In this document: in pieces, positions 7,391 to 36,743 of the stretch | Layout of the letters: every line of letters begins with the position of its first letter | How positions within the stretch are numbered: the first letter of the stretch is position 1 | Assembly (NCBI GenBank): GCA_904063045.1 | Contig: CAJFCJ010000061.1 | Span: 93,385-132,788, forward strand | DNA: 39,404 bases | Direction: 5' to 3' | DNA from: Dimorphilus gyrociliatus | Taxonomy: Eukaryota > Animalia > Annelida | Made by a program: the position numbers and the translations under genes | Notes under the pieces: generated by a model | What the model was told of the DNA's origin: nothing | The model's input: only the letters and a program-made list of their open reading frames with translations | The model's database searches: none

Positions 7391-7893
7391 CTTGAAAATT
7401 AAAAAAGTTTACAAATATAAATGGGTATAAATACAATAATGGAAGAACAAAAAAAACAATATTATCCTTATTCTTTGTAATGACCTTTTGACCTTTTAGT
7501 TTCAAAACATAGAATAAAGACAGCTTATTTTGTGTAAAAATAAATCTGTAATACTTTTGTTATACAAAATTGAATAATTTTTTGAAAAATCACCAACTCT
7601 TCATCCATTTTAAAATCTTTATTAAATGGTACAATTACTGAACACCTGTTGAGAGTTATCAATGGTAGAAACTCCTATATTGTTGAAAAATGGATATCAT
7701 AATGAAAAACAGACAAAAATGAAAATTTTTACCTCAACACATTCATAAAAGTGAATACCATTCTCAAAATAATAACGAAAATGATGAGAAGAATTGAATT
7801 CCGTTTTTTTACTTTTAGCATAGTGGATAAAATCAAATCTAGGCCAGTTGTTATCATGAAATACTCCTTTATACATTGATTTAAAGTGGATGA

Positions 7894-8504
7894 NNNNNNN
7901 NNNNNNNNNNNNNNNNNNNNNNNNNNNNNNNNNNNNNNNNNNNNNNNNNNNNNNNNNNNNNNNNNNNNNNNNNNNNNNNNNNNNNNNNNNNNNNNNNNNN
8001 NNNNNNNNNNNNNNNNNNNNNNNNNNNNNNNNNNNNNNNNNNNNNNNNNNNNNNNNNNNNNNNNNNNNNNNNNNNNNNNNNNNNNNNNNNNNNNNNNNNN
8101 NNNNNNNNNNNNNNNNNNNNNNNNNNNNNNNNNNNNNNNNNNNNNNNNNNNNNNNNNNNNNNNNNNNNNNNNNNNNNNNNNNNNNNNNNNNNNNNNNNNN
8201 NNNNNNNNNNNNNNNNNNNNNNNNNNNNNNNNNNNNNNNNNNNNNNNNNNNNNNNNNNNNNNNNNNNNNNNNNNNNNNNNNNNNNNNNNNNNNNNNNNNN
8301 NNNNNNNNNNNNNNNNNNNNNNNNNNNNNNNNNNNNNNNNNNNNNNNNNNNNNNNNNNNNNNNNNNNNNNNNNNNNNNNNNNNNNNNNNNNNNNNNNNNN
8401 NNNNNNNNNNNNNNNNNNNNNNNNNNNNNNNNNNNNNNNNNNNNNNNNNNNNNNNNNNNNNNNNNNNNNNNNNNNNNNNNNNNNNNNNNNNNNNNNNNNN
8501 NNNN
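7894..8504. other. Assembly gap (run of N)
   Basis: 611 consecutive N characters. Confidence 1.
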
Positions 8505-9432
8505 TCGACCCAAATATCTCAATTTCGCATATAGTTATACCATTACCAGGATGTGGAATAGATTCTGTCTTGAATAGAGCTAGGTATCTACCAATTGTAT
8601 ATTTAGGACAACGTCTAGTCATGTAATAAGTAGCATCATTTATTGTATTACATAATATTTCCGGTTGCCAGGGAGGATTTGTAAATTGATTGTTTGATAT
8701 TATTATCTTTACACGACTTAGACGGACAACAGGATCTATTCTATTCACCAATGAAACAGCATATATTTCACTCTTTATTTCCAAGTCTATAGCCCACCAA
8801 CTTGGAACAATTGAACCTGTCCATGAACAGTGTGGAGCCTCCCATTTAGAGAAACTTTGCCCATCATTGGCACTATATTTAGTTTCGCCTGGTGATAATA
8901 TATTGAATTTATTCCTGTCAATATCTCGCATTGTCCATATTTCAATCTCGCATATAATTAATTTCTTATTGATTAATTCAAGTTTAACGGCTGCCAATTT
9001 TGAATATTGCGGTCCATTCAAACAATCAACAGTTAGTGATTGCATTGACCCAACTGAACCTCGATTGCACAGAGTAAAAGAGTTGATATTATTAGGGTCA
9101 GTATCATTGATACTAGTGAAAAATAAAACATTTGACATTGAATGACCTCTGGTATTTAAAATTCTGATTGTCCTTATAAAATAGCTGTTTGAAAATACAA
9201 CCATCCACCATTCATTTTCCATAGGGTTAATAGTAGAGCTAAAGCATACTGCTTGATTAAAACTTCCATCCAGTGCCAATTGTTTCCTTTTCAGGTTGCC
9301 ATCTTCACTAGATGAATAACAAACTTGATTTAAAGCGATGTTAACAGTTTGATGTGTATCAGTTGACAAAGTAGAACCAATGTTGATTTTTAGCAGGAAA
9401 AGGATAAAGATTAAATTTGACTTTAGAATCAT
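8505..9432 (-). CDS. Secreted protein with two tandem F-type lectin (FTP/F5-8C-like) domains; 3' end lost in the gap
   Basis: Signal peptide MILKSNLIFILFLLKINIG. Domain 1: NIALNQ..YSSS, ALDG, EWWMVVF, ICEIEIW. Domain 2: ANDG, HCSWT, SWWAIDL, NRIDPVVRL, GRYLAL, ICEIEIFG. No intron seen. Confidence 0.85.
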
Positions 9433-19518: not shown

Positions 19519-20799
19519 TTAAGAATTCCCAATCAATATTCTATTCAGAGGGAAGAAATTTGCCATTTCAGAATTATTATCCCACAAGTTTAGTTTAAGA
19601 ATTCCACGAAAGTTGAGAGGGGAACATTCCAGTTGGAATGAAAGAGGACAACACAAATCTTTTCTTAATATACTTTCAAAACTGCAAAAGTTCTTACCAA
19701 TATTTGTATTGCAGTCAACTTCTAAAGAAGCTTGAATTCCATTATCTCTCTTCCATTCTTTATCATTTTTTATATAAACTTTGACAGAATTTTTTGTACA
19801 TTCTATCTTCTCCTTAGATCTATTCAACTAAGTGTTGAAACAATGAAAAAAGATAAGAGAATTAGATGAATAACTAAAAATGAAAAAAAAAACCTTTTCT
19901 TTAAAGGAATCTTCAGAAAGGAAAAGAAATATTTTCAAACAGCAATTTTCATTATTTTTCTGTGTTAAAGTACAAAAGTAATAGAGAATGAACTTTTCTT
20001 TAAAACAGAGAAAATGATTGGAAATAACTGTCTCCATAATCGTTAAGTCTTGATTTTTAAATGAAACTGAAATGCTGTTGGCTTCTATTAACTCACTTCT
20101 TTGAAGAGAAAAAATAAAACCTCTTTGAATGAAAGGTAGATAAATATTTCCAACCAGTTCTGATTTAATAGTCAAATTGACATTTTCAATTTTTTCTTCT
20201 GGTATAGCATAATTCTTGGTGAAAATTTTGTGTTTTAAATTCTCCACCTTATCCTTAAAACAAGTGACTACTAGTTGACAATTTACACCTTTATTATTTA
20301 CCAGTTTTGCAGTTGCGCAAATGAATAAGACAGAGAGTGGAGATAACGGTTTGTGTGTTATCTGTAATTTTTGATTTTCTCCAACTTTTAAAAACAAGTA
20401 ATCATTTTCAATATCAGAGTAACATTCCTGATTAATTTCACACTGTTTAAATGGTAATTTGATCCAGCCAATTGGAGATATAGCTCTGTCATTAAAACTT
20501 GAAATTTCTAACCAATCATCATTAATAGATATATTTATTCTGTATTTATCTTCTTCAATAGAATCTAAAAGCATAATTTCCAATCCACAATCAGTGAAAT
20601 ATTCCAAAACTCCTTGATGTAGAGTAACATCCATAGAAATTGATTTTTCATCCCAATAACATTTCGTATCTGGTTTAATCAGTGAAAAACTTCTCAATTT
20701 CTTTGTAGATTCCAATTCTATTACATTGTCATGAGAAAAAATTCTATATTTGTTGTTAGTCAAAAAAACTCTATACTTACCAGTGACAGTGAAAGACAT
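19519..20799 (-). CDS. ZU5-UPA-like protein (UNC5C-like/PIDD-like module, no death domain seen)
   Basis: Two exons, about 20799-19894 and 19827-19519, joined in phase 0. QGVLEYFTDCGLEIML and RAISPIGWI resemble ZU5 GGxL..GVxLxIP and LSPVV; KNFCSFESILRKDLCCPLSFQLE..GILKLNL resembles the UNC5 UPA EIPFxxIW..CxFxLE segment. The 5' exon structure is uncertain. Confidence 0.55.
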
Positions 20800-21338
20800 A
20801 GTCTTTCATATGATAACTATTGTAATGGTGGTGACTTTCAAATCTTTTGTAATCAGTCATATGTATTTATGGCCAGAGTTGATAGCTTATCTGTAAAAAT
20901 TGAAAATTGTTATTGATATTTATTATATATTAGTTTTATTGAATGAATTTCAATATGGAAAGTAGAAACCTGGGTTAGACAATCCTTAGTTTACTTTCCT
21001 TCTCTCTCTTTCTCTACCTCTATCTCATACACACACAGGCTTTCCCCAAAACTCAAGATAAAAATTTTATTATCTTATCTCAATTATTTGATTGTAAAAT
21101 GTTATTTTTTATTTCTTTTGTAATTGACAACAACTGAAAATAACAATTAGTGTCCTCAATAACTAAATATTGACATAACACTAACACAGATTAAGGGCAA
21201 AAATAAACTGACAATTTGAGATTATTTTCCTAAAAGTTTAAAGGGAAATAAGGACAGAGATTTTAAAAAAATTCTAAATATTATAAATGAGAATATAGGG
21301 CTAATTAGTCCTAATCTTATCTCCTTAATTTTACAGAG

Positions 21339-23023
21339 AACGAATTTGTTTTCTGTTGGTGAGCCGTAGGAGAATGTTACAAAATTTAAAATATCTTTCA
21401 AATACGGATGTTTTCTTATTTATTTCGTGCCGGAATGAGTTGATAGAAGAGAAGAACATTTTATCAATTTACCTAAATCAAGCCTATTCATTTAAAGAAA
21501 ATGTTCAGTAGATTTTATTGATTTCATATTTTTTTGAATAATCATTTAAAAAAAAACCTACAGGAAAATTACGCTTCGTCTGACGATAAATTTGAATTTA
21601 AATTCAGAATGAAAGAAGAATATTTTCAATTGGATCAACAACACGGAATAAGAATATCACTGACAGGAAAAGATGTTAAAGAAATCAAATCTTTTGCCAC
21701 TTTTGAAGAGATATTTAAGACTAATCCAGGTAAGATTTTGCCAATTTTTTGTTTTACAAGAGTAGTAATCAACATTGTTTTATCATAAGAAACAAATATG
21801 ATTGATCCTTTTAAATTTGAAATTGGCAACAAATATCCTCCTCTTCATATGACTATTTCAATTGGTAAATTTTCTGAAGATTGTATTTTCGATACATTAC
21901 TCAAGTATAGAGATTCGGATTCTATTAAATCTTCTAGAAGAAGACAGGAAGATAAAGCTACAATTAAAGAAGCTTTCTATTATTTTTGGAGAAGATGTAC
22001 TAGTTTTTACTTTTAATTTGATTATATAGAAGGATTAGTTGAAACTTTCTTATTTTCTATCCATAGCACTCACAGGACACATATGTATGCCATTTCGACA
22101 AACTGCTACAACAGTAAACTTTGATGATGATAGGCCTGTAAGATCAGTTGAAAACATTTTTTTTATAATTTACAATAATTCATTATAATTTTCTTTTTAA
22201 GGGAAAGAAGAAACAAGTTTTTGATACAACTCAATCAAATGTTTCAATCATTTTAAACAGCACTAAAAACAGAAACTACCATGAAATTGATATTGAAAAT
22301 TTGAAAAGATTAATGAAAATGCTCAATTATAGATATGAAATATGGGAGAATTTGTCTTTGGAAGAGTTCAATACAAAAATAGATTCCCTACAAATAGATT
22401 CATTAAAGTCACTCACATTCTATGTAATGAGCCACGGCAACTATCAAGGTTTTGTTTTAAAGGACATGAATAGCTATATAAAATATACAGATTTTCTTTT
22501 TACTATTACAAAAAAAAAGAAATTGAAAAATTTAGATATTCCAATGATATTCTTTTTTCAAACTTGCCGTTCAGCAACAGGTAACAAACACACTTTTTGA
22601 AAAGAGACAAACAATACTTTTAAATACATTTTCACATTAAAAAATAGATGATGCTTCAAAAGTAAGACCTTTGCAGGAGTTTAGTCACAGTTTACATCCA
22701 TTTACGACTAATAATAAAACTGACGAAGAGAACATTTTTGAAGGATATGCATCAGTTAAATGTAAACAGAATCTCTTTCAAATTGTTGTTTTTATATTAT
22801 ATCATCTATTTTTGTAGATTTTCCATCATTTCGGACACCGTATGGAACATATTATATACGTGCAATAATCATCTGTATTATTCTGTTCCGGCATAAAGAC
22901 AATCTGGAAGAGATAATGGAAAAGGTTAAAAAATGCATGTTTGGAGTATGTAACTATCAATTGCCAGAATATTTTAGCACCTTGAAGAAAGATGTTTATC
23001 TTTATGTTTGTAATAATAGCTGA
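21339..23023 (+). CDS. Caspase-family (peptidase C14) protein with an N-terminal UPA-like domain
   Basis: Exons about 21339-21502, 21564-21729, 21790-about 22000, about 22068-22136, 22202-22580, 22629-about 22760 and 22818-23023. p20: IILN..NRNYHEIDIENL, MSHG (His) and FQTCR (Cys). p10: IFEGYASV, FPSFRTPYGTYYI, QLPEYFSTLKKDVYL, then TGA at 23021-23023. Start codon uncertain. Confidence 0.85.
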
Positions 23024-23052
23024 GAGAGAGAGTGTGTGTGTGTGTGTGTGTG
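23024..23052. repeat. (GA)n(GT)n microsatellite
   Basis: gagagagagtgtgtgtgtgtgtgtgtgtg directly after the caspase stop codon. Confidence 0.9.
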
Positions 23053-23094
23053 TTTTTACTATGTTGTATTGTAAATGTAGGAATTTCTGCTTCT

Positions 23095-23285
23095 TCAAAA
23101 CAGTAATTGTCCTTTTCAATCATTTACCAATTTGTTAAAGTACTCAAACCAATAAAACCCCAAAAAGTCTTATCTATATTATCAATAAATGTAATTTCTT
23201 TAGAAATTAATCAACAAATTATGAGTATTCTGACAAAGAGTATGTATTGAGTAAAATGAGTTTCTAGCTCTAAACAAGCAAGGTC
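23095..23285 (+). repeat. Diverged dispersed repeat (second copy at about 38095-38292)
   Basis: Shared caatcattta.caa.tt.t.aaagtactc ... aaatgtaattt ... gtattgagtaaa(a)tgagtttctag.tctaaacaag.aag. Confidence 0.75.
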
Positions 23286-23436
23286 TACACACTCCCATAA
23301 AATATTTATCAGGCTGAACCACGTCCCTTCCAAATCGGAAAAGAACTTGAACTTTTTAAGTCTATTGGATTCGATCACTCAAGCAGAAAAAGAAGGCAAA
23401 CTTTATGTTATGCTCCTCATATGCCTATAGAACAAG

Positions 23437-23977
23437 ATGGTGAGGAAGACAAGAGGAGGAAGAGAGCTACAGATTGAAGACAAAGTCTTAACATCAGACA
23501 AGCTAAAAGCAAGACAAAAATGGGTAACTGGAGTCCTAGCCAAGATCTTAATCAGTCATGACGGAGTTAAAAAGAAATTCAGGATCGAGACCAAAATGGG
23601 GCCATTCATAAGAGCTGTGGGTGAACTACTACTTGTGGGAGAATGAATAGAAGAAAGCTTGTTTGTTATGTTATATGTCTGTATGAGTCAGTGTGAATGT
23701 GTGAAGGAATGAGTGTTTGGCATGGGTCAAGGATGGCTGACTCGATCTCATATCGTTATCGGACAGTATAATTTGATATCACATCATAAGTTAAATATAA
23801 AACCCAAGACATGATGGAAATGTGGCACCACAGATGAGTAGTGTCAAACGCTCAGCTAGGCGACTCAAGTAATGTATAAAACTATAAAAGGAAGTGAATG
23901 TAACCTGATTCTGTTCCAATAAACTGAGTGCCTGCTATATTCTTGAATGTTGGTATCCAATATCTTTCTTTATCTCA
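23437..23977 (+). mobile_element. BEL/Pao LTR-retrotransposon relic: integrase C-terminus plus putative LTR
   Basis: ELQIEDKVL..RQKWVTG..HDGVK..IETKMGPFIRAVGELL matches the BEL/Pao pol C-terminal pattern. Purine tract gggagaa at the stop; TG at 23644; tataaa at about 23874; aataaa at 23918; CA at 23976-23977. Confidence 0.7.
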
Positions 23978-24029
23978 TGGTGGAGCAGATAAGCTAATTT
24001 GGTAATTTTCAGTTTTGGTTTCCAGAAAG

Positions 24030-24700
24030 GTGATTGTTGATATTTAGCTACAGTAACTTTGCAGATACTGTGTGAAATCTGCATCCTCTTTCAGAATAAA
24101 TACATATATGTTTTATCATTAATAGTTTGGGTTCTAACAGGATTTAGCAGGCTGTGAGTTGTTTTATAAAGCAACTTGTTTAATCTACATTCATTGTACA
24201 GCTTTTGTAATACAGTATTTCATACTTGGTTCAACCCTTACATTAAGATCTGAATTTCATGAAAACAACTCTGTTATCACAGATACTAAATCGAAATATA
24301 TTTTCAAAATCATATATAAAGTATCAAATTATTCTCTCTTTTTATTTACAATTGAGAATCCCAAGGAATATTTGTGCAGAAAAGTTGAAAATTAAAGAAA
24401 TTGCATGTTCAGATTGTTGGTCTGTATTAGGTCTTGCTATCAGGATAAACAATGATGTTGAAGGATGGAACAGGAGAATAAATGAAAAGACACCTGGCAA
24501 AAGGGTCATGTTATTTGCTGATAGACATTTTGAACAGTTGTAGAACAACTTCTATCTTAAAAGAAGCTAAAGAAATATCAGAAGAAAAGTGAGCTTTAGT
24601 AGCAATATAGATAGCTCAATGTAGCAGTGTGCCAGATTATCAAACAATGTTGTAGAGTGGAAAGCTTGTTTCAGTTCAGGCTGTCTTTAGATAATCTTTT
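24030..24700 (+). mobile_element. Highly degraded MULE transposase relic
   Basis: CWSVLGLAIRINNDVEGWNRRINEK matches the RTNNxxEGWH motif and the 13.8-kb copy (WSVFNQSIHTNNDLEGFHNRLN); upstream QAVS..IKQL remnant; many stops. Confidence 0.7.
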
Positions 24701-24858: not shown

Positions 24859-27336
24859 TCATCTACTAATTGTTAGACAATGAAATTGCTGTAACAAACC
24901 TTCTAAATATCTATTTTTTGGATTATCTCTACTTAATGTAGAAGTATAGCTCAATATGTTTAGAGTATATGAAGAATTTAAAAGTGCTTCATATATATTC
25001 TCCAAATAAACAATATCTATGGATGAATTCTTATCAATATGTACTGTTTGTAATTGAGAAAACTCTTTTAGATAATATCCAAGTTTTTTGTATACTTCTT
25101 CAGTCAGGCCACAGTTTGTAAAATGAATATCCTTCAAACTTTCATTTGATGAATGAATAAGTCCTTGTAGAATATGAATAATTCCATCTTTTATCTTATC
25201 GTTCCCCTCCAAATTGATTATTTCTATTTTAGAACAAGTCCTTAGTAAATTGCCTAATGTTACGCAATTTTCGTTGTTTAGGTTGCATCGTTGAAGGTAT
25301 ATACTCTTTAAATTTGTTGAAGATAGGATGTGAAAAATTTCATTTAAACCATCAGTTATAAATGTATTTTTACTTAGATTGATTGTTTCAATTCTAGTAC
25401 AGATTTTCAGCAATTTCTTTATGCTCTTACATTCTACTTCGCATAGATCACAATCTTTAAAATTGAGAAACTTTAAAGTGTTTGCTGATTGGGCAAGTCC
25501 ATCACAAATATAACATAATCCAATGCTCATAGATCTATTTGATTCTAAATTGATTGACTCTAAATTAGAACAATCTTTAAAAAGATCTCCTAAATTCTTA
25601 CAATCCTCTGGATTCAAATCATAAGATTTGAAGTTTAAATTCTTCAGGCTACTTGTTAAATGATTGAGCTGTTTATAGATGTTGATTAATTTAGTTTTTG
25701 TTGTGTTGTGCCCCACCTCTATGTCAATGGTTTCTAGTTTAGAACAACCTTGAAAAAAGCTCTTAATCAATTGACATTTATTTTCATGGATACAACCCAA
25801 AGACATTTGGATATTTTTTAAAGTATTTGAAGATTGGACCAGATTTTCAATGTTAGAAATTTCAGTAAAATATTTCCTGAGAGATCCATTCCAATACTTT
25901 AGACTGTACAAATGGACTGTTTCTAATTTAGAACAAGTTTTCAATAAAATTCCAATTGCTTTAAATTCTGTTTCTCTACCAGGCCTTATATCGAAATGAA
26001 TGTTCTTTAAACTGTTAGATTGAAGCATGAGTTCATTACAAACATTTTCAATATCTTGATATACTGCTTCTAGATGAATGCTTTCTATTTTTGTGCAGTT
26101 TTTCAGAAAATTTGGCAAACATTTCCATTTTGTATCATTTCTTACTTGAGGTACAGTACAAGTTATCTGTTTTAAACTGTTTTTTGAAGAAATGAGTGCT
26201 TTACAAAAGTTCATATCAAATGCATGACAATTTATATTTATTGCCTCTATGTTGGAGCAATTTTCCAATAGATTTTCAATAATCTCAGACTCAAAGACAA
26301 CACACCGAGAAATATGTATATACCTAAGAGCTTTTGAGGAGCCAATAAGACGTTCAAAAATATTTTCAATGTAATGTTCTTCCAACTTATTATTTCCTTC
26401 AATATGAAAAGTGTGAATTTTTGAACAACATTTTAAAGCATTACCAATCTGTTGACAATTTTCTTCATTAAAATTGCAGTTCTTAATATACAATTTTATC
26501 ATTTTATGAGATGAATAAAATATTTCTTCCAAAATTTTCAAGTTTTGTTTGTTAATATTTTTAAATGACAGTTCAATTATTTGAAATGAGTGTTTCTTAT
26601 CTTTCTCATCAATTTCTATCCATCTTTTTAGGAGCATTTCATCCAAGTTTTTTGAATCATTGTTAATATCATTTTCAAAAGAATAATCAATTTGGATACT
26701 TTCCTTAATTTGCATATCAAGCCTTTTGATATTATTTGGATTAGCTATCATTTTAGTATTCTCTTTTAATTGAGAATTGAAATATTTTTCCCTTTTTTCA
26801 ACTAGTTCTTTAAATTTGCTTTTAACAATGTTAAACTCGTCCTTAACCTTTTTAATTGCTCTATTTTCATATTCCTCAATTTGTTTTAGTTTTTCAAGAT
26901 TGTGTCTCCTTTCTTCATTAAAGAAATTATCTATAATTTCTTTTGTCTTTTCATATTTAACCATTGAAATAACCTTGCAATTTTCATGTTTTTCTTCAAA
27001 GCACATAACACAGATATTTTCTTCTGAATGTGTTTGACAATAAAGTAATGTTTCCATTTCATGATCTTTACATAATTTCCTCTGCAATAAAGATTTTTCT
27101 AATAAATTTGTAGTTAAATATTTGGGTAGCATATCAATCTTCTCTATTGGCTGTCCGTCAGCTTGTTCACATTCTTGGCATTTAAGCTTGCCATTGTCAA
27201 TTGCAAATTGCCTCAAACATTCCAAACAGAATATATGTTTACAAGGAAGTATTCTTGGGTCATTTTCTAACCAAGATTTAGAACAAATACCACAAATTAG
27301 CTCCTTTTTGCTGATAAAATAGCCTTTGGTAGCCAT
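24859..27336 (-). CDS. Intronless RING-B-box-coiled-coil (TRIM-like) protein with C-terminal RI-type leucine-rich repeats, 825 aa
   Basis: RING CGIC..PRILPCKHIFCLEC..KCQEC; B-box CKDH..LYCQTH..ICVMC..KHENC; E/K-rich coiled coil; repeated CxxLGxLLKxCSxLExIxL / xICxxLxxSxxxLKxI units; uninterrupted ATG-to-stop ORF. Confidence 0.9.
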   Translation of the reverse strand: MATKGYFISKKELICGICSKSWLENDPRILPCKHIFCLECLRQFAIDNGKLKCQECEQADGQPIEKIDMLPKYLTTNLLEKSLLQRKLCKDHEMETLLYCQTHSEENICVMCFEEKHENCKVISMVKYEKTKEIIDNFFNEERRHNLEKLKQIEEYENRAIKKVKDEFNIVKSKFKELVEKREKYFNSQLKENTKMIANPNNIKRLDMQIKESIQIDYSFENDINNDSKNLDEMLLKRWIEIDEKDKKHSFQIIELSFKNINKQNLKILEEIFYSSHKMIKLYIKNCNFNEENCQQIGNALKCCSKIHTFHIEGNNKLEEHYIENIFERLIGSSKALRYIHISRCVVFESEIIENLLENCSNIEAININCHAFDMNFCKALISSKNSLKQITCTVPQVRNDTKWKCLPNFLKNCTKIESIHLEAVYQDIENVCNELMLQSNSLKNIHFDIRPGRETEFKAIGILLKTCSKLETVHLYSLKYWNGSLRKYFTEISNIENLVQSSNTLKNIQMSLGCIHENKCQLIKSFFQGCSKLETIDIEVGHNTTKTKLINIYKQLNHLTSSLKNLNFKSYDLNPEDCKNLGDLFKDCSNLESINLESNRSMSIGLCYICDGLAQSANTLKFLNFKDCDLCEVECKSIKKLLKICTRIETINLSKNTFITDGLNEIFHILSSTNLKSIYLQRCNLNNENCVTLGNLLRTCSKIEIINLEGNDKIKDGIIHILQGLIHSSNESLKDIHFTNCGLTEEVYKKLGYYLKEFSQLQTVHIDKNSSIDIVYLENIYEALLNSSYTLNILSYTSTLSRDNPKNRYLEGLLQQFHCLTISR

Positions 27337-33835: not shown

Positions 33836-36743
33836 ATGAATGAAAGAAAAAGATTAAAATTTCTTTTACCAATATTTTTCTTAAAAGTTTTCCTTTTCAT
33901 TTACAATCTCCAATTAACAGCTTCTGCAGGATGCTTCAGTACTTTTGTTGAGTATAATGGTTATTGTTATAAAAGTACATACTCAAAAGGCGATTGGTAT
34001 TCCTCAGAAAGGATTTGTCATGTCTATGGTGCAGAAATGATTAGTATCCTAAGTGAAAAGGAAGAATATTTTGTTGAAAATCGTTTACTAGTTAGAAATT
34101 GTTGAAAATCAACTTTCAATAATTTATATAAATCATTTTTTCTTGTTTTTTTTCCAGTAGAATACTAACCGAGGAGACATATTCTATATAGGTTTAAACA
34201 AACTAAACAGAAGAGAATATCTGTCAGTATAGTTTATATAAAAATTTTAATTCAATTTTCTCAATTCTGTTTTAATTTAACAGATGGTCTGATGGTTCAC
34301 CTGTTAATTATACAGGTACACTTATCAACTCTAATGATTCTTTGTGCGTTGCTTATAGTCCAAGATGTAGGTAATTAATTTAAAAAAGAAAACAAAACTA
34401 AAACAAAATTGACTTTTTTTTTTTGCACAGCTACAACCAAATGGAAAAACATTAATTGTGGAATGGAAGAAAAACGCATTTGTAAAATGAAGAAAGGTGA
34501 TACGCGACCCACTGGTAGACCAACTCCAGCAACTTCTCATCCGCCGGGCCATTGTCCAAAAGGTTGGCTGGAATCATCCCGAAAATGTTTTTTGGTAGTT
34601 TTCTTGGATAAAGTCAATGGGCTAAGATATTATGAAGCAAGAAGAAGTTGTAGGTCATTAAACTTAATGTCAGATTTAGCTACAATTGAAAGTGCAGAAG
34701 AGACTTCATTAATTGTTTCACGCGCAGTAGCTGTTGGTGATACAGATGGATTATGGTTTGGTTTATTCAGAAGAAATTATTTGTCTGATTGGCTATGGTA
34801 TGATAATTCTCCAATTAATCTTGACAGATACAGTAACTGGAATAGAAAGCCAGAAAAACAGGCTTGTTTCATTAACTAGTTACTCAATTACAATACTTGA
34901 GAATATTTTTCTACAGACAAGGGCTTACATATCACTTTTTGATAATTATTTTGCGAGAGTAGGTCAATGGGTAGGACATTCATATGGCAGAATGGGCTAT
35001 GTATGTAGTATGAAAAAAAGTTGGTATTTATGATTTACAAAAGAAATCAGTAAAATATGTTTTTTTCTATTATTAGGTGACATTGAATTGATGTCAACAA
35101 CTCCCCAAAAGAAAACTGTTTGTCAAAGGGGAGAATTTCTTGGAGATGGTTGTTATACTATACAAAATGAAAAGAAAACTTGGAATGAAGCTTTAACATC
35201 TTGTAAAAATTATGTATAATTTTTAAATTCTGCATTTTCAAAAGTAAAAAGTCTTTACAACTTCTTTTCTTCCAAAGAATATGAATTTGGCTTCTATTCA
35301 TACTGTATCATTGACTGAAAGACTAAAAGTTTATATTAGAAACACAGAAAAATATTACTGGATTGGATTGAATAAGTTTAATTATACCGAGCCATTTTTA
35401 TGGAGTGATAATTCTGTATATATCTATAGAAATTGGCATCGAGTTTCTCGTGACAATAGATATAACAATTGTGTTGCAATTTCACCAAATGCCAAATGGA
35501 GAGCTTTTAATTGTAGCACACAGTTGGAAAGTATTTGCAAAAAATCATTTGGTGTTTTACCTACAGTTCCTCCTCAGATTGATGGAACATGCCCTGATCC
35601 AAATCAGCCTTATTGGCTCAAATATGGCAAATATTGCTATTTATTTCCCTATAATGAGGTAAGTTCTTATGAAGAAGCATTAGAGACGTGTAGTAGAATA
35701 AGCAGTGGATTAGCTGTTCCAGTCACCATTCATGATATGTCAGAACAATTTTTGATAACTAGACGAATCCAGCATTTAGAGAAAGTCTGGATAGGCTTGA
35801 CACGTGAATCTTCTAATCAACCATACCGTTGGGTTGATAACACTTCTGTAACATTTGAATTTTGGAGAAAGTATGATGTAGGTCGTGGGGATTGCGTTGC
35901 TCTCACTAATGATAAAAATGTAAGGATGCCGGGCCGATGGATAAAACAACCATGTTCACTGCCAGATAACAAAAAAATTGGCTTTGCATGTAAAACTTTG
36001 ACAATTCCATACCCAACCACTCCTATCCCAGGGAGAGGAAAATGTCCTCCAAAATTTTCAAATGAAGACAATTGGGAAATATTTGGTGAAAAATGCTTAC
36101 TTTTTGTAAAAAGTCATTTTGCAGATTACAAACTAGCTACAAGAATATGTAGAAGAGTTAATGGCACCTTGGCAGAGATAAAAACATATGATGAAAATTG
36201 CTTTATTGAACAACAAGCCAAAAAACATTTACCATTTTACATAAAAGGTTTATGGATTGGTCTAAGAAGAAGAAAAAATGGTCAATATTTGTGGGAAACT
36301 GGTGATAAATTCCATTTTGACTATTTTTACTATAAGGATGACAGAAAAGGAAATTGCACTGTATTGAATACTACTGTACATGGTTATTGGAAAAGTCACA
36401 GATGCTCTAAAAATCATTTTCCTTTTGTATGTCAAACAGATTTGTTAAAAGGTATATTACTTTTCAAATGTCACTTATTTTCTCTTTTTTTAATTAGTAT
36501 GTTATTTTTTTGGTAGATTCACCCAAATTGCCAACTACCACTAAGAAACCAACTAGTAGTAAAGTAGGGCTAATTATTGGCATAACAATTGGTATTTGTT
36601 CTCTAATTGCAATATTTGGTGGTTTAATTTACAAATGGAAAACTTCTGCAAGAGTTCAAACAAACACAAATCCAGGTGGAGATAACAATAGTTTTCCAAA
36701 GAAAATTCAAATGTCAAAATGTCAAAATGAAGAATCCTGTTGA
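33836..36743 (+). CDS. Type I membrane protein with five C-type-lectin-like domains (mannose-receptor-like architecture)
   Basis: Signal peptide; five CTLDs (YNGYCYK..FYIGLN..WSDG..WKNINC; CPKGW..LWFGL; YWIGLN..WRAFNC; VWIGL..WIKQPC; LWIGL..WKSHRC..FVCQ); Pro/Thr linkers; TM GLIIGITIGICSLIAIFGGLIY; short tail ending at TGA 36741-36743. Confidence 0.92.

Follow-up and report, generated by a model that had tools for sequence, protein, structure and literature searches.

The window analysed here is a stretch of 39,404 nucleotides from the annelid Dimorphilus gyrociliatus (contig CAJFCJ010000061.1); it is AT-rich, with a G+C content of ~28%, and carries on its forward strand the caspase gene DgyrCDS14655. 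The public protein of this gene (CAD5126559.1, hereafter P0001) was recovered in a full-library protein search as 100% identical to the 127-residue translation of positions 22202-22582. One public RNA run covers the locus, and it was used in the form of assembled contigs, which drop minor variants. The run can be taken as RNA because its contigs skip GT..AG introns in the caspase gene and in its neighbour, leaving the introns and the intergenic stretch uncovered. A contig of 1184 nt follows the caspase gene with 0 mismatches through the exon chain 21420 (where the contig cuts the exon) to 21502, 21564-21729, 21790-21996, 22067-22137, 22202-22448, 22520-22580, 22648-22761, and 22818 to at least 23052; the introns of the locus are 53-79 nt long. 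The features of the gene and of its immediate 3' side are the following:

21374..21502, + strand: exon 1 of the caspase gene; the contig covers 21420-21502 and the joint 21502/21564, and the start is putative
21564..21729, + strand: exon 2 of the caspase gene; joints 21502/21564 and 21727/21788 (cut +2, GT..AG); it holds the ATG of P0001 at 21610
21790..21996, + strand: exon 3, N-terminal region; contig joints, no Pfam match
22067..22137, + strand: exon 4, end of the N-terminal region; joints 21996/22067 and 22137/22202
22202..22580, + strand: p20 (large-subunit) exon as the genome reads; PF00656 and alignment to the structures of caspase-1, -3 and -4
22449..22519, + strand: exitron of 71 nt, GT..AG, between the His and the Cys; contig joint 22445/22517 (cut +3)
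22648..22761, + strand: exon 6, inter-subunit linker with the Asp sites ATDD and NKTD; joints 22578/22646 (cut +2) and 22761/22818
22649..22651, + strand: premature TGA of the exitron-spliced mRNA, from translation of the contig exon chain
22818..23023, + strand: exon 7, p10 (small subunit), with the Arg at 22832-22834 and the stop codon at 23021-23023; C-terminal part of PF00656, E 0.076
23437..23646, + strand: retroelement-type open reading frame (DUF5641) that is spliced onto P0001 as its C-terminus; PF18701, E 5e-5, 23.9 bits

Exon 1 offers a candidate ATG at 21374, in a frame that is open upstream to 21335 and continuous into exon 2, and an AG at 21337-21338 is an alternative candidate acceptor ahead of this exon. 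The 5' end of the caspase mRNA lies beyond the cover of the contig, which starts at 21420, and more coding sequence upstream is possible. The initial annotation had connected the exons between 21339 and 22136 to the one starting at 22202, and the contig bears this out with the joints 21502/21564, 21729/21790, 21996/22067 and 22137/22202. Expression of the caspase gene is strong, the word depth of its contig being 181 versus 136 for the neighbouring gene. At the 3' side the transcript continues to at least 23052, and a GA/GT microsatellite occupies 23024-23060, immediately 3' of the caspase stop codon.

The neighbouring gene is placed head-to-head with the caspase gene, at 19519-21011 on the minus strand; it is expressed and has four introns, including 19828-19893, 20718-20780 and 20891-20969. 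On the other side, an intronless open reading frame of 825 residues (24859-27336, minus strand) converges on the caspase gene and encodes a RING finger followed by RI-type leucine-rich repeats (LRRs); several RING models of Pfam match the finger with E between 1e-4 and 1e-2, none of them reaching its cut-off. Elsewhere in the window, a run of N that marks an assembly gap at 7890-8520 falls within a minus-strand open reading frame of 567 residues, and the open reading frames at 34409-36516 on the plus strand show, by eye, repeated motifs resembling C-type lectins (WIGL and the Cys spacing).

Comparison of the contig with P0001 reveals errors at both ends of the public gene model. P0001 starts at the ATG at 21610, and the contig adds an exon upstream of it. 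At the other end, the contig passes the annotated donor of P0001 at 22945/22946 unspliced and reaches the stop codon at 23021-23023; the tail of the last exon supported in this way matches the canonical C-terminal strand of caspases, which is absent from P0001. The open reading frame at 23437-23646 is outside the caspase gene, whose true end is 23023, and the 3' end of P0001 is chimaeric, being joined to part of a retroelement. A separate, unspliced RNA contig of 2951 nt covers 23065-24300. The public model of DgyrCDS14409 (P0007), a paralogue treated below, likewise closes with a stretch that is not related to caspases and has no match in Pfam. As it stands, the P0001 model also conceals that, in the assembled mRNA, the catalytic Cys is out of frame, as is described below.

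The identity of the caspase domain is well established. Peptidase_C14 (PF00656, cut-off 21.4 bits) matches the exon 22202-22582 alone with E 1.2e-9 (38.6 bits) and the whole P0001 with E 6.4e-14 (52.6 bits), and a PDB sequence search aligns residues 151-337 of P0001 with caspase-1, -3 and -4. In this alignment the Arg of KNRNY (22271-22273), the His of SHG (22433-22435), the Cys of QTCRS (22565-22567) and the Arg of SFRT (22832-22834) are located, and the pocket residues Arg179, Gln283 and Arg341 (caspase-1 numbering) are matched by KNRNY, QTCRS and SFRT, respectively. Aligned to eight other caspases, DgyrCDS14655 keeps every invariant position, namely the Arg in KNRNY, an Asp, the His and Gly in SHG, a Pro, the Cys in QTCRS, the Arg in SFRT and a Gly; it also has the Gln of the pentapeptide. 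The Pfam match and the alignment to solved caspases thus confirm a caspase domain with the catalytic His and Cys and both Arg residues of the S1 pocket, as had been read from the sequence at the outset. With an intact His/Cys pair and an Arg/Gln/Arg pocket, the enzyme as read from the genome would be expected to cut after Asp. Exon 6 aligns with the linker region of other caspases. The canonical pentapeptide QACxG is not matched, since QTCRS has Thr in the place of Ala and Ser in the place of Gly; nevertheless, this is not a special feature of the gene, because its closest relatives show a wide choice of pentapeptides (QPCRK, QSCRE, QCCRT, NCCRG, QACRE and others), and this variation is a trait of the family.

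These relatives were found in D. gyrociliatus itself, i.e., the paralogue DgyrCDS14409 (P0007, 859 residues), and as exon-sized open reading frames on Logan contigs from two studies (SRR233722xx and ERR142247xx), which make up the loci L001-L017 and have a G+C content of 22-29% and short introns. Their caspase domains are the nearest to that of DgyrCDS14655, with 30-40% identity and E between 1e-12 and 1e-9, whereas ordinary caspases give ~1e-4. P0007 fits a family profile that was built without it (E 3.7e-32), and the caspase exon plan is common to DgyrCDS14655 and the relatives: a p20 exon that ends just past the Cys, a linker exon and a p10 exon. On each Logan contig that is long enough, long open reading frames on the same strand precede the caspase exons, and these encode NACHT (L012, E 1.8e-9), RI-type LRRs (L003, LRR_6, E 5.8e-9) or FHA (L016, E 1.8e-5). 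The layout of the relatives is therefore NACHT, LRR or FHA, followed by an unnamed module, a ZU5 domain, a linker of 150-200 residues and the caspase. The unnamed module is recognised by the motif GW[LI]x[IV]P and sits before ZU5. The ZU5 domain is matched by PF00791 with E 5.1e-6 and 27.1 bits (cut-off 21) on L013, and in 5 of the 11 family members at E up to 1; the top PDB match of the family ZU5 profile is the ZU5 domain of ZO-1 (E 0.0046). In the relatives this domain ends in an invariant Phe that is followed by Ser in 8 of 11 cases and by Cys in 3 of 11, one sequence reading HFS; PIDD1, NLRP1 and CARD8 have their self-cleavage site at this position, which is a putative cleavage site here. 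The linker of 150-200 residues occupies the position of UPA, a domain that Pfam leaves undetected even in these ZU5-linked relatives. Between the ZU5 region and the caspase exon, L014 (1197-1601) and L015 (2237-2614) show by eye an extra caspase-like domain that lacks the His and Cys motifs.

A phylogeny with other caspases, which the initial annotation had proposed, nests DgyrCDS14655 within this group: in a maximum-likelihood tree of the p20 region (~120 columns) it falls inside the ZU5-linked clade with support of 93/88, and its sister is P0012 of locus L016 (support 96/86), a locus that carries FHA, ZU5-like and caspase parts. Judged from its sequence, the caspase domain descends from the ZU5-linked clade.

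In the transcript, 71 nt (22449-22519) are removed within what had been annotated as one continuous exon, 22202-22581. The word depth in the bin 22340-22536 is exactly the contribution of the spliced contig itself; since the depth is fully explained in this way, no assembled contig retains the 71 nt. The joint is not an assembly artefact driven by repeats, because only three bases are common across it, and the splice sites of the exitron are at least as strong as the others used at the locus. Because 71 is not a multiple of three, the frame shifts after SHGNYQ and meets the TGA at 22649-22651. Translated, the exitron-spliced mRNA gives the N-terminal region and the first half of p20, followed by a tail of 21 out-of-frame residues, and no catalytic Cys; in the genomic or retained reading, the His-Gly and the Cys are present in one polypeptide, whereas in the only assembled mRNA the Cys is out of frame. 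Splicing of the exitron is real and abolishes the catalytic reading frame of the mRNA assembled from this one run, where it could be specific to the sample. The initial annotation had concluded that the gene encodes an unusual initiator-type caspase; the long prodomain and the non-canonical QTCRS stand, the latter as a family trait, but the notion of an active initiator caspase as the main product is weakened because the only RNA evidence is an mRNA unable to make the catalytic Cys.

All the relatives read through the exitron stretch and align there, so the 71 nt are ancestral coding sequence; they are open in the caspase frame, and when they are kept the spacing between His and Cys is the canonical 44 residues. 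On the 3' side of the exitron, the caspase frame is open for 126 codons up to its proper end, against 7 and 15 stops in the two alternative frames; given the stop frequency of the window, a frame of 126 open codons has a chance of ~1.4e-4. This maintained downstream frame argues therefore that the retained isoform is under selection, or was until recently. The same observations bear on the idea that DgyrCDS14655 is a decaying gene, i.e., a young pseudogene that lost its sensor and ZU5, gained a cryptic intron and now yields nothing but a nonsense transcript. Such a history would agree with the frameshifted form being the sole assembled transcript, with no contig over the 71 nt, as well as with an N-terminal region diverged beyond recognition (see below), a pentapeptide drifted to QTCRS and the retroelement fragment that adjoins the gene. 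It is difficult to reconcile with the integrity of all the catalytic and pocket residues, with 71 nt that are open in frame, with a downstream frame that reaches the canonical caspase C-terminus after 126 codons, and with a transcript that is deeper than that of the neighbour; we consider it unlikely.

Ahead of the caspase domain lies an N-terminal region of ~190 residues, for which the initial annotation had described a beta-rich, UPA-like prodomain without CARD, DED or death domain. The second part of this description holds: Pfam finds no CARD, DED or death domain in the known upstream exons or in P0001, the 5' end of the mRNA lying beyond the cover of the contig. The first part gained no support from Pfam, from the PDB sequence search, from the profiles of the relatives or from shuffle tests, and the structure models are poor. 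For these searches and for structure prediction P0001 was used as a stand-in for the transcript-supported model, the joined exons being translated only to follow the frame. UPA (PF17217), FIIND (PF13553) and ZU5 gave no Pfam match in the upstream exons or in P0001:1-135 at E up to 1-5, and the prodomain has no PDB sequence match. Protein searches by shared words, run with P0001:1-135, P0007:1-510 and the family alignment, returned the queries and one paralogue only, AT-rich low-complexity words having saturated their candidate lists. When the window was split into 1,626 six-frame pieces, the family profile of ZU5 scored exon 1 at E 22 and left exon 2 unmatched, and three profiles of the exons that follow ZU5 in the relatives missed the exons of the target, their best match being exon 3 at a non-significant E of 0.15. 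In building these alignments, short post-ZU5 exon pieces were misplaced by MAFFT and were left out as rows. A combined profile of the unnamed module and ZU5 misses P0001, and both domains are absent from the exons of the target and from 21012-21373 on the same chain. Compared pairwise with the neighbour, with P0007 and with the sister locus, the N-terminal region scores no higher than shuffled sequences, and tblastn of P0001 on all the loci of the relatives matches residues 135-264 only, i.e., the p20 part.

Structure prediction was of little help in this respect. The AlphaFold model of P0001:1-135 has a pLDDT of 37.8 with mixed helix and strand, which is too poor to judge the fold; the ESM Atlas model of the prodomain (pLDDT 0.50) resembles unrelated folds only, at a TM score of at most 0.35, with no beta-sandwich match; and the AlphaFold model of P0007:236-515, made from a seven-row alignment, has a pLDDT of 41.8 and returned noise from Foldseek. 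Two resemblances were considered and rejected. One was an alignment by eye of exon 1 to the first strands of ZU5, together with QQHGIRISL to the F-S-x-H-G-I-I of the relatives, which gave an HMM E of 22 and shuffle p values of 0.09-0.5, the best of 12 further tests being 0.008; the other was a domain shared by the neighbour and the prodomain, with shuffle p values of 0.09 and 0.025 before correction. On these searches, the N-terminal region is without a detectable relative and without a death-fold, ZU5 or UPA signature, and it could be a UPA-type fold so diverged that it escapes sequence methods.

If it were such a fold, DgyrCDS14655 might be a working initiator caspase whose prodomain, a UPA-type beta-sandwich, oligomerises as in the filaments of NLRP1 and CARD8 or in PIDD1 and thereby activates the caspase directly. 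The N-terminal region does sit where the closest relatives have the post-ZU5 linker, at the UPA position, its exon 3 is the best match in the window to the post-ZU5 profile, the catalytic residues are intact and the downstream frame is maintained. Nevertheless, this proposal has to face the lack of any Pfam match to UPA, ZU5 or FIIND even at permissive E values and of any PDB sequence match, profiles of the relatives that miss the region, pairwise scores within the range of shuffles, tblastn matches confined to p20, models that show mixed helix and strand or no match to a beta-sandwich, and an assembled mRNA without the frame of the Cys. It is, in our opinion, quite improbable.

The neighbouring gene was examined in the same framework. 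A profile search places in its product, possibly in two copies, the unnamed module with the motif GW[LI]x[IV]P that the relatives have before ZU5 (E 5.4e-9); at this locus the module is seen in the neighbour alone, on the strand opposite to the caspase gene, and neither a ZU5 profile match nor a Pfam domain was found in the neighbour. This match, together with the similar depth of both genes and the known transcript ends at 21011 and 21420, could suggest that the two genes are the halves of a former single-chain sensor-caspase, driven by a shared promoter of at most ~400 nt and yielding a non-covalent pair, but the neighbour has no ZU5 match, the two proteins have no significant similarity (the p values of 0.09 and 0.025 given above) and the pairing of their products is a conjecture, so that we regard this arrangement as very improbable. 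An extension of it, in which an inversion split a sensor-ZU5-caspase so that the neighbour kept the module of the sensor side and the caspase gene kept an unrecognisable ZU5/UPA remnant and the protease, the products acting as non-covalent fragments in the manner of NLRP1 and CARD8 and the exitron being a safety switch that holds the protease off until needed, is equally far from likely.

Taken together, DgyrCDS14655 is a strongly diverged but ordinary member of the caspase family with an odd splicing twist, and it is probably a lineage-specific, fast-evolving paralogue in which the sensor and ZU5 were lost and an exitron breaks the catalytic frame. According to this explanation, this copy would have lost both the sensor and ZU5, and its main product in the sampled RNA would be a truncated protein without the Cys, or an mRNA marked for decay. 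An active enzyme would require that the 71 nt be retained, and splicing of the exitron might act as an on/off or dampening switch, like the truncated isoforms of caspase-2, -8 and -9; the spliced form would then be a decoy or a decay substrate, and splicing would set the amount of active enzyme that is possible. The retained form is predicted from its residues to be an Asp-specific protease; it may be activated by forced dimerisation through the N-terminal region, and would cleave itself at the linker Asp sites ATDD and NKTD.

It is useful to place this gene in the context of other caspases and of the systems that use ZU5 and UPA domains. A survey of apoptosis genes in lophotrochozoans that included D. 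gyrociliatus described species-specific annelid caspases with pro-domains other than CARD and DED; those that it lists are Z-binding, kinase, PARP, TIR, ROC and subtilase, ZU5 and UPA not being in that list, and no PIDD was found in lophotrochozoans (bioRxiv 10.1101/2023.12.11.571055). DgyrCDS14655 resembles those caspases in having an N-terminal region that is neither CARD nor DED, and the gene is not discussed in the portion of that report consulted (bioRxiv 10.1101/2023.12.11.571055). Considered alone, it adds a further divergent caspase to an annelid in which diversification of this family is already known. A search of the literature found no description of ZU5-linked caspases, the clade to which it belongs. 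Like P0007 and the members of L001-L017, it has a caspase domain that is 30-40% identical to theirs, the same exon plan and a relaxed pentapeptide; the relatives differ in having NACHT, LRR or FHA, the unnamed module, ZU5 and the linker, none of which is detected in the target. Therefore, it looks like a stripped-down offshoot of a ZU5-linked sensor-caspase system.

In this system, caspases are fused behind NACHT, LRR or FHA sensors by means of a true ZU5 domain, i.e., a layout similar to that of NLRP1 or PIDD with the protease built in. NLRP1 and CARD8 have a FIIND (ZU5-UPA) followed by a CARD, and PIDD1 has the order LRR-ZU5-ZU5-UPA-DD. The relatives are alike in having a sensor, a ZU5 domain with an F/S-type site, a domain at the UPA position and a death effector, the caspase replacing the CARD or DD. 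In contrast, no ZU5 or UPA is detected in the target, which would be at most the equivalent of the released C-terminal fragment.

Another comparison concerns the truncated splice isoforms caspase-2S, caspase-8L and caspase-9b/9S, in which splicing in or before the large subunit keeps the prodomain and eliminates the catalytic Cys, the products being inhibitors or degraded. The exitron of 71 nt has the same Cys-less outcome in DgyrCDS14655; the difference is that here the intron interrupts a coding exon that would otherwise be continuous and that the truncated form is the sole one assembled. If the exitron were regulated, this gene would be a simple natural example of a caspase switched by splicing.
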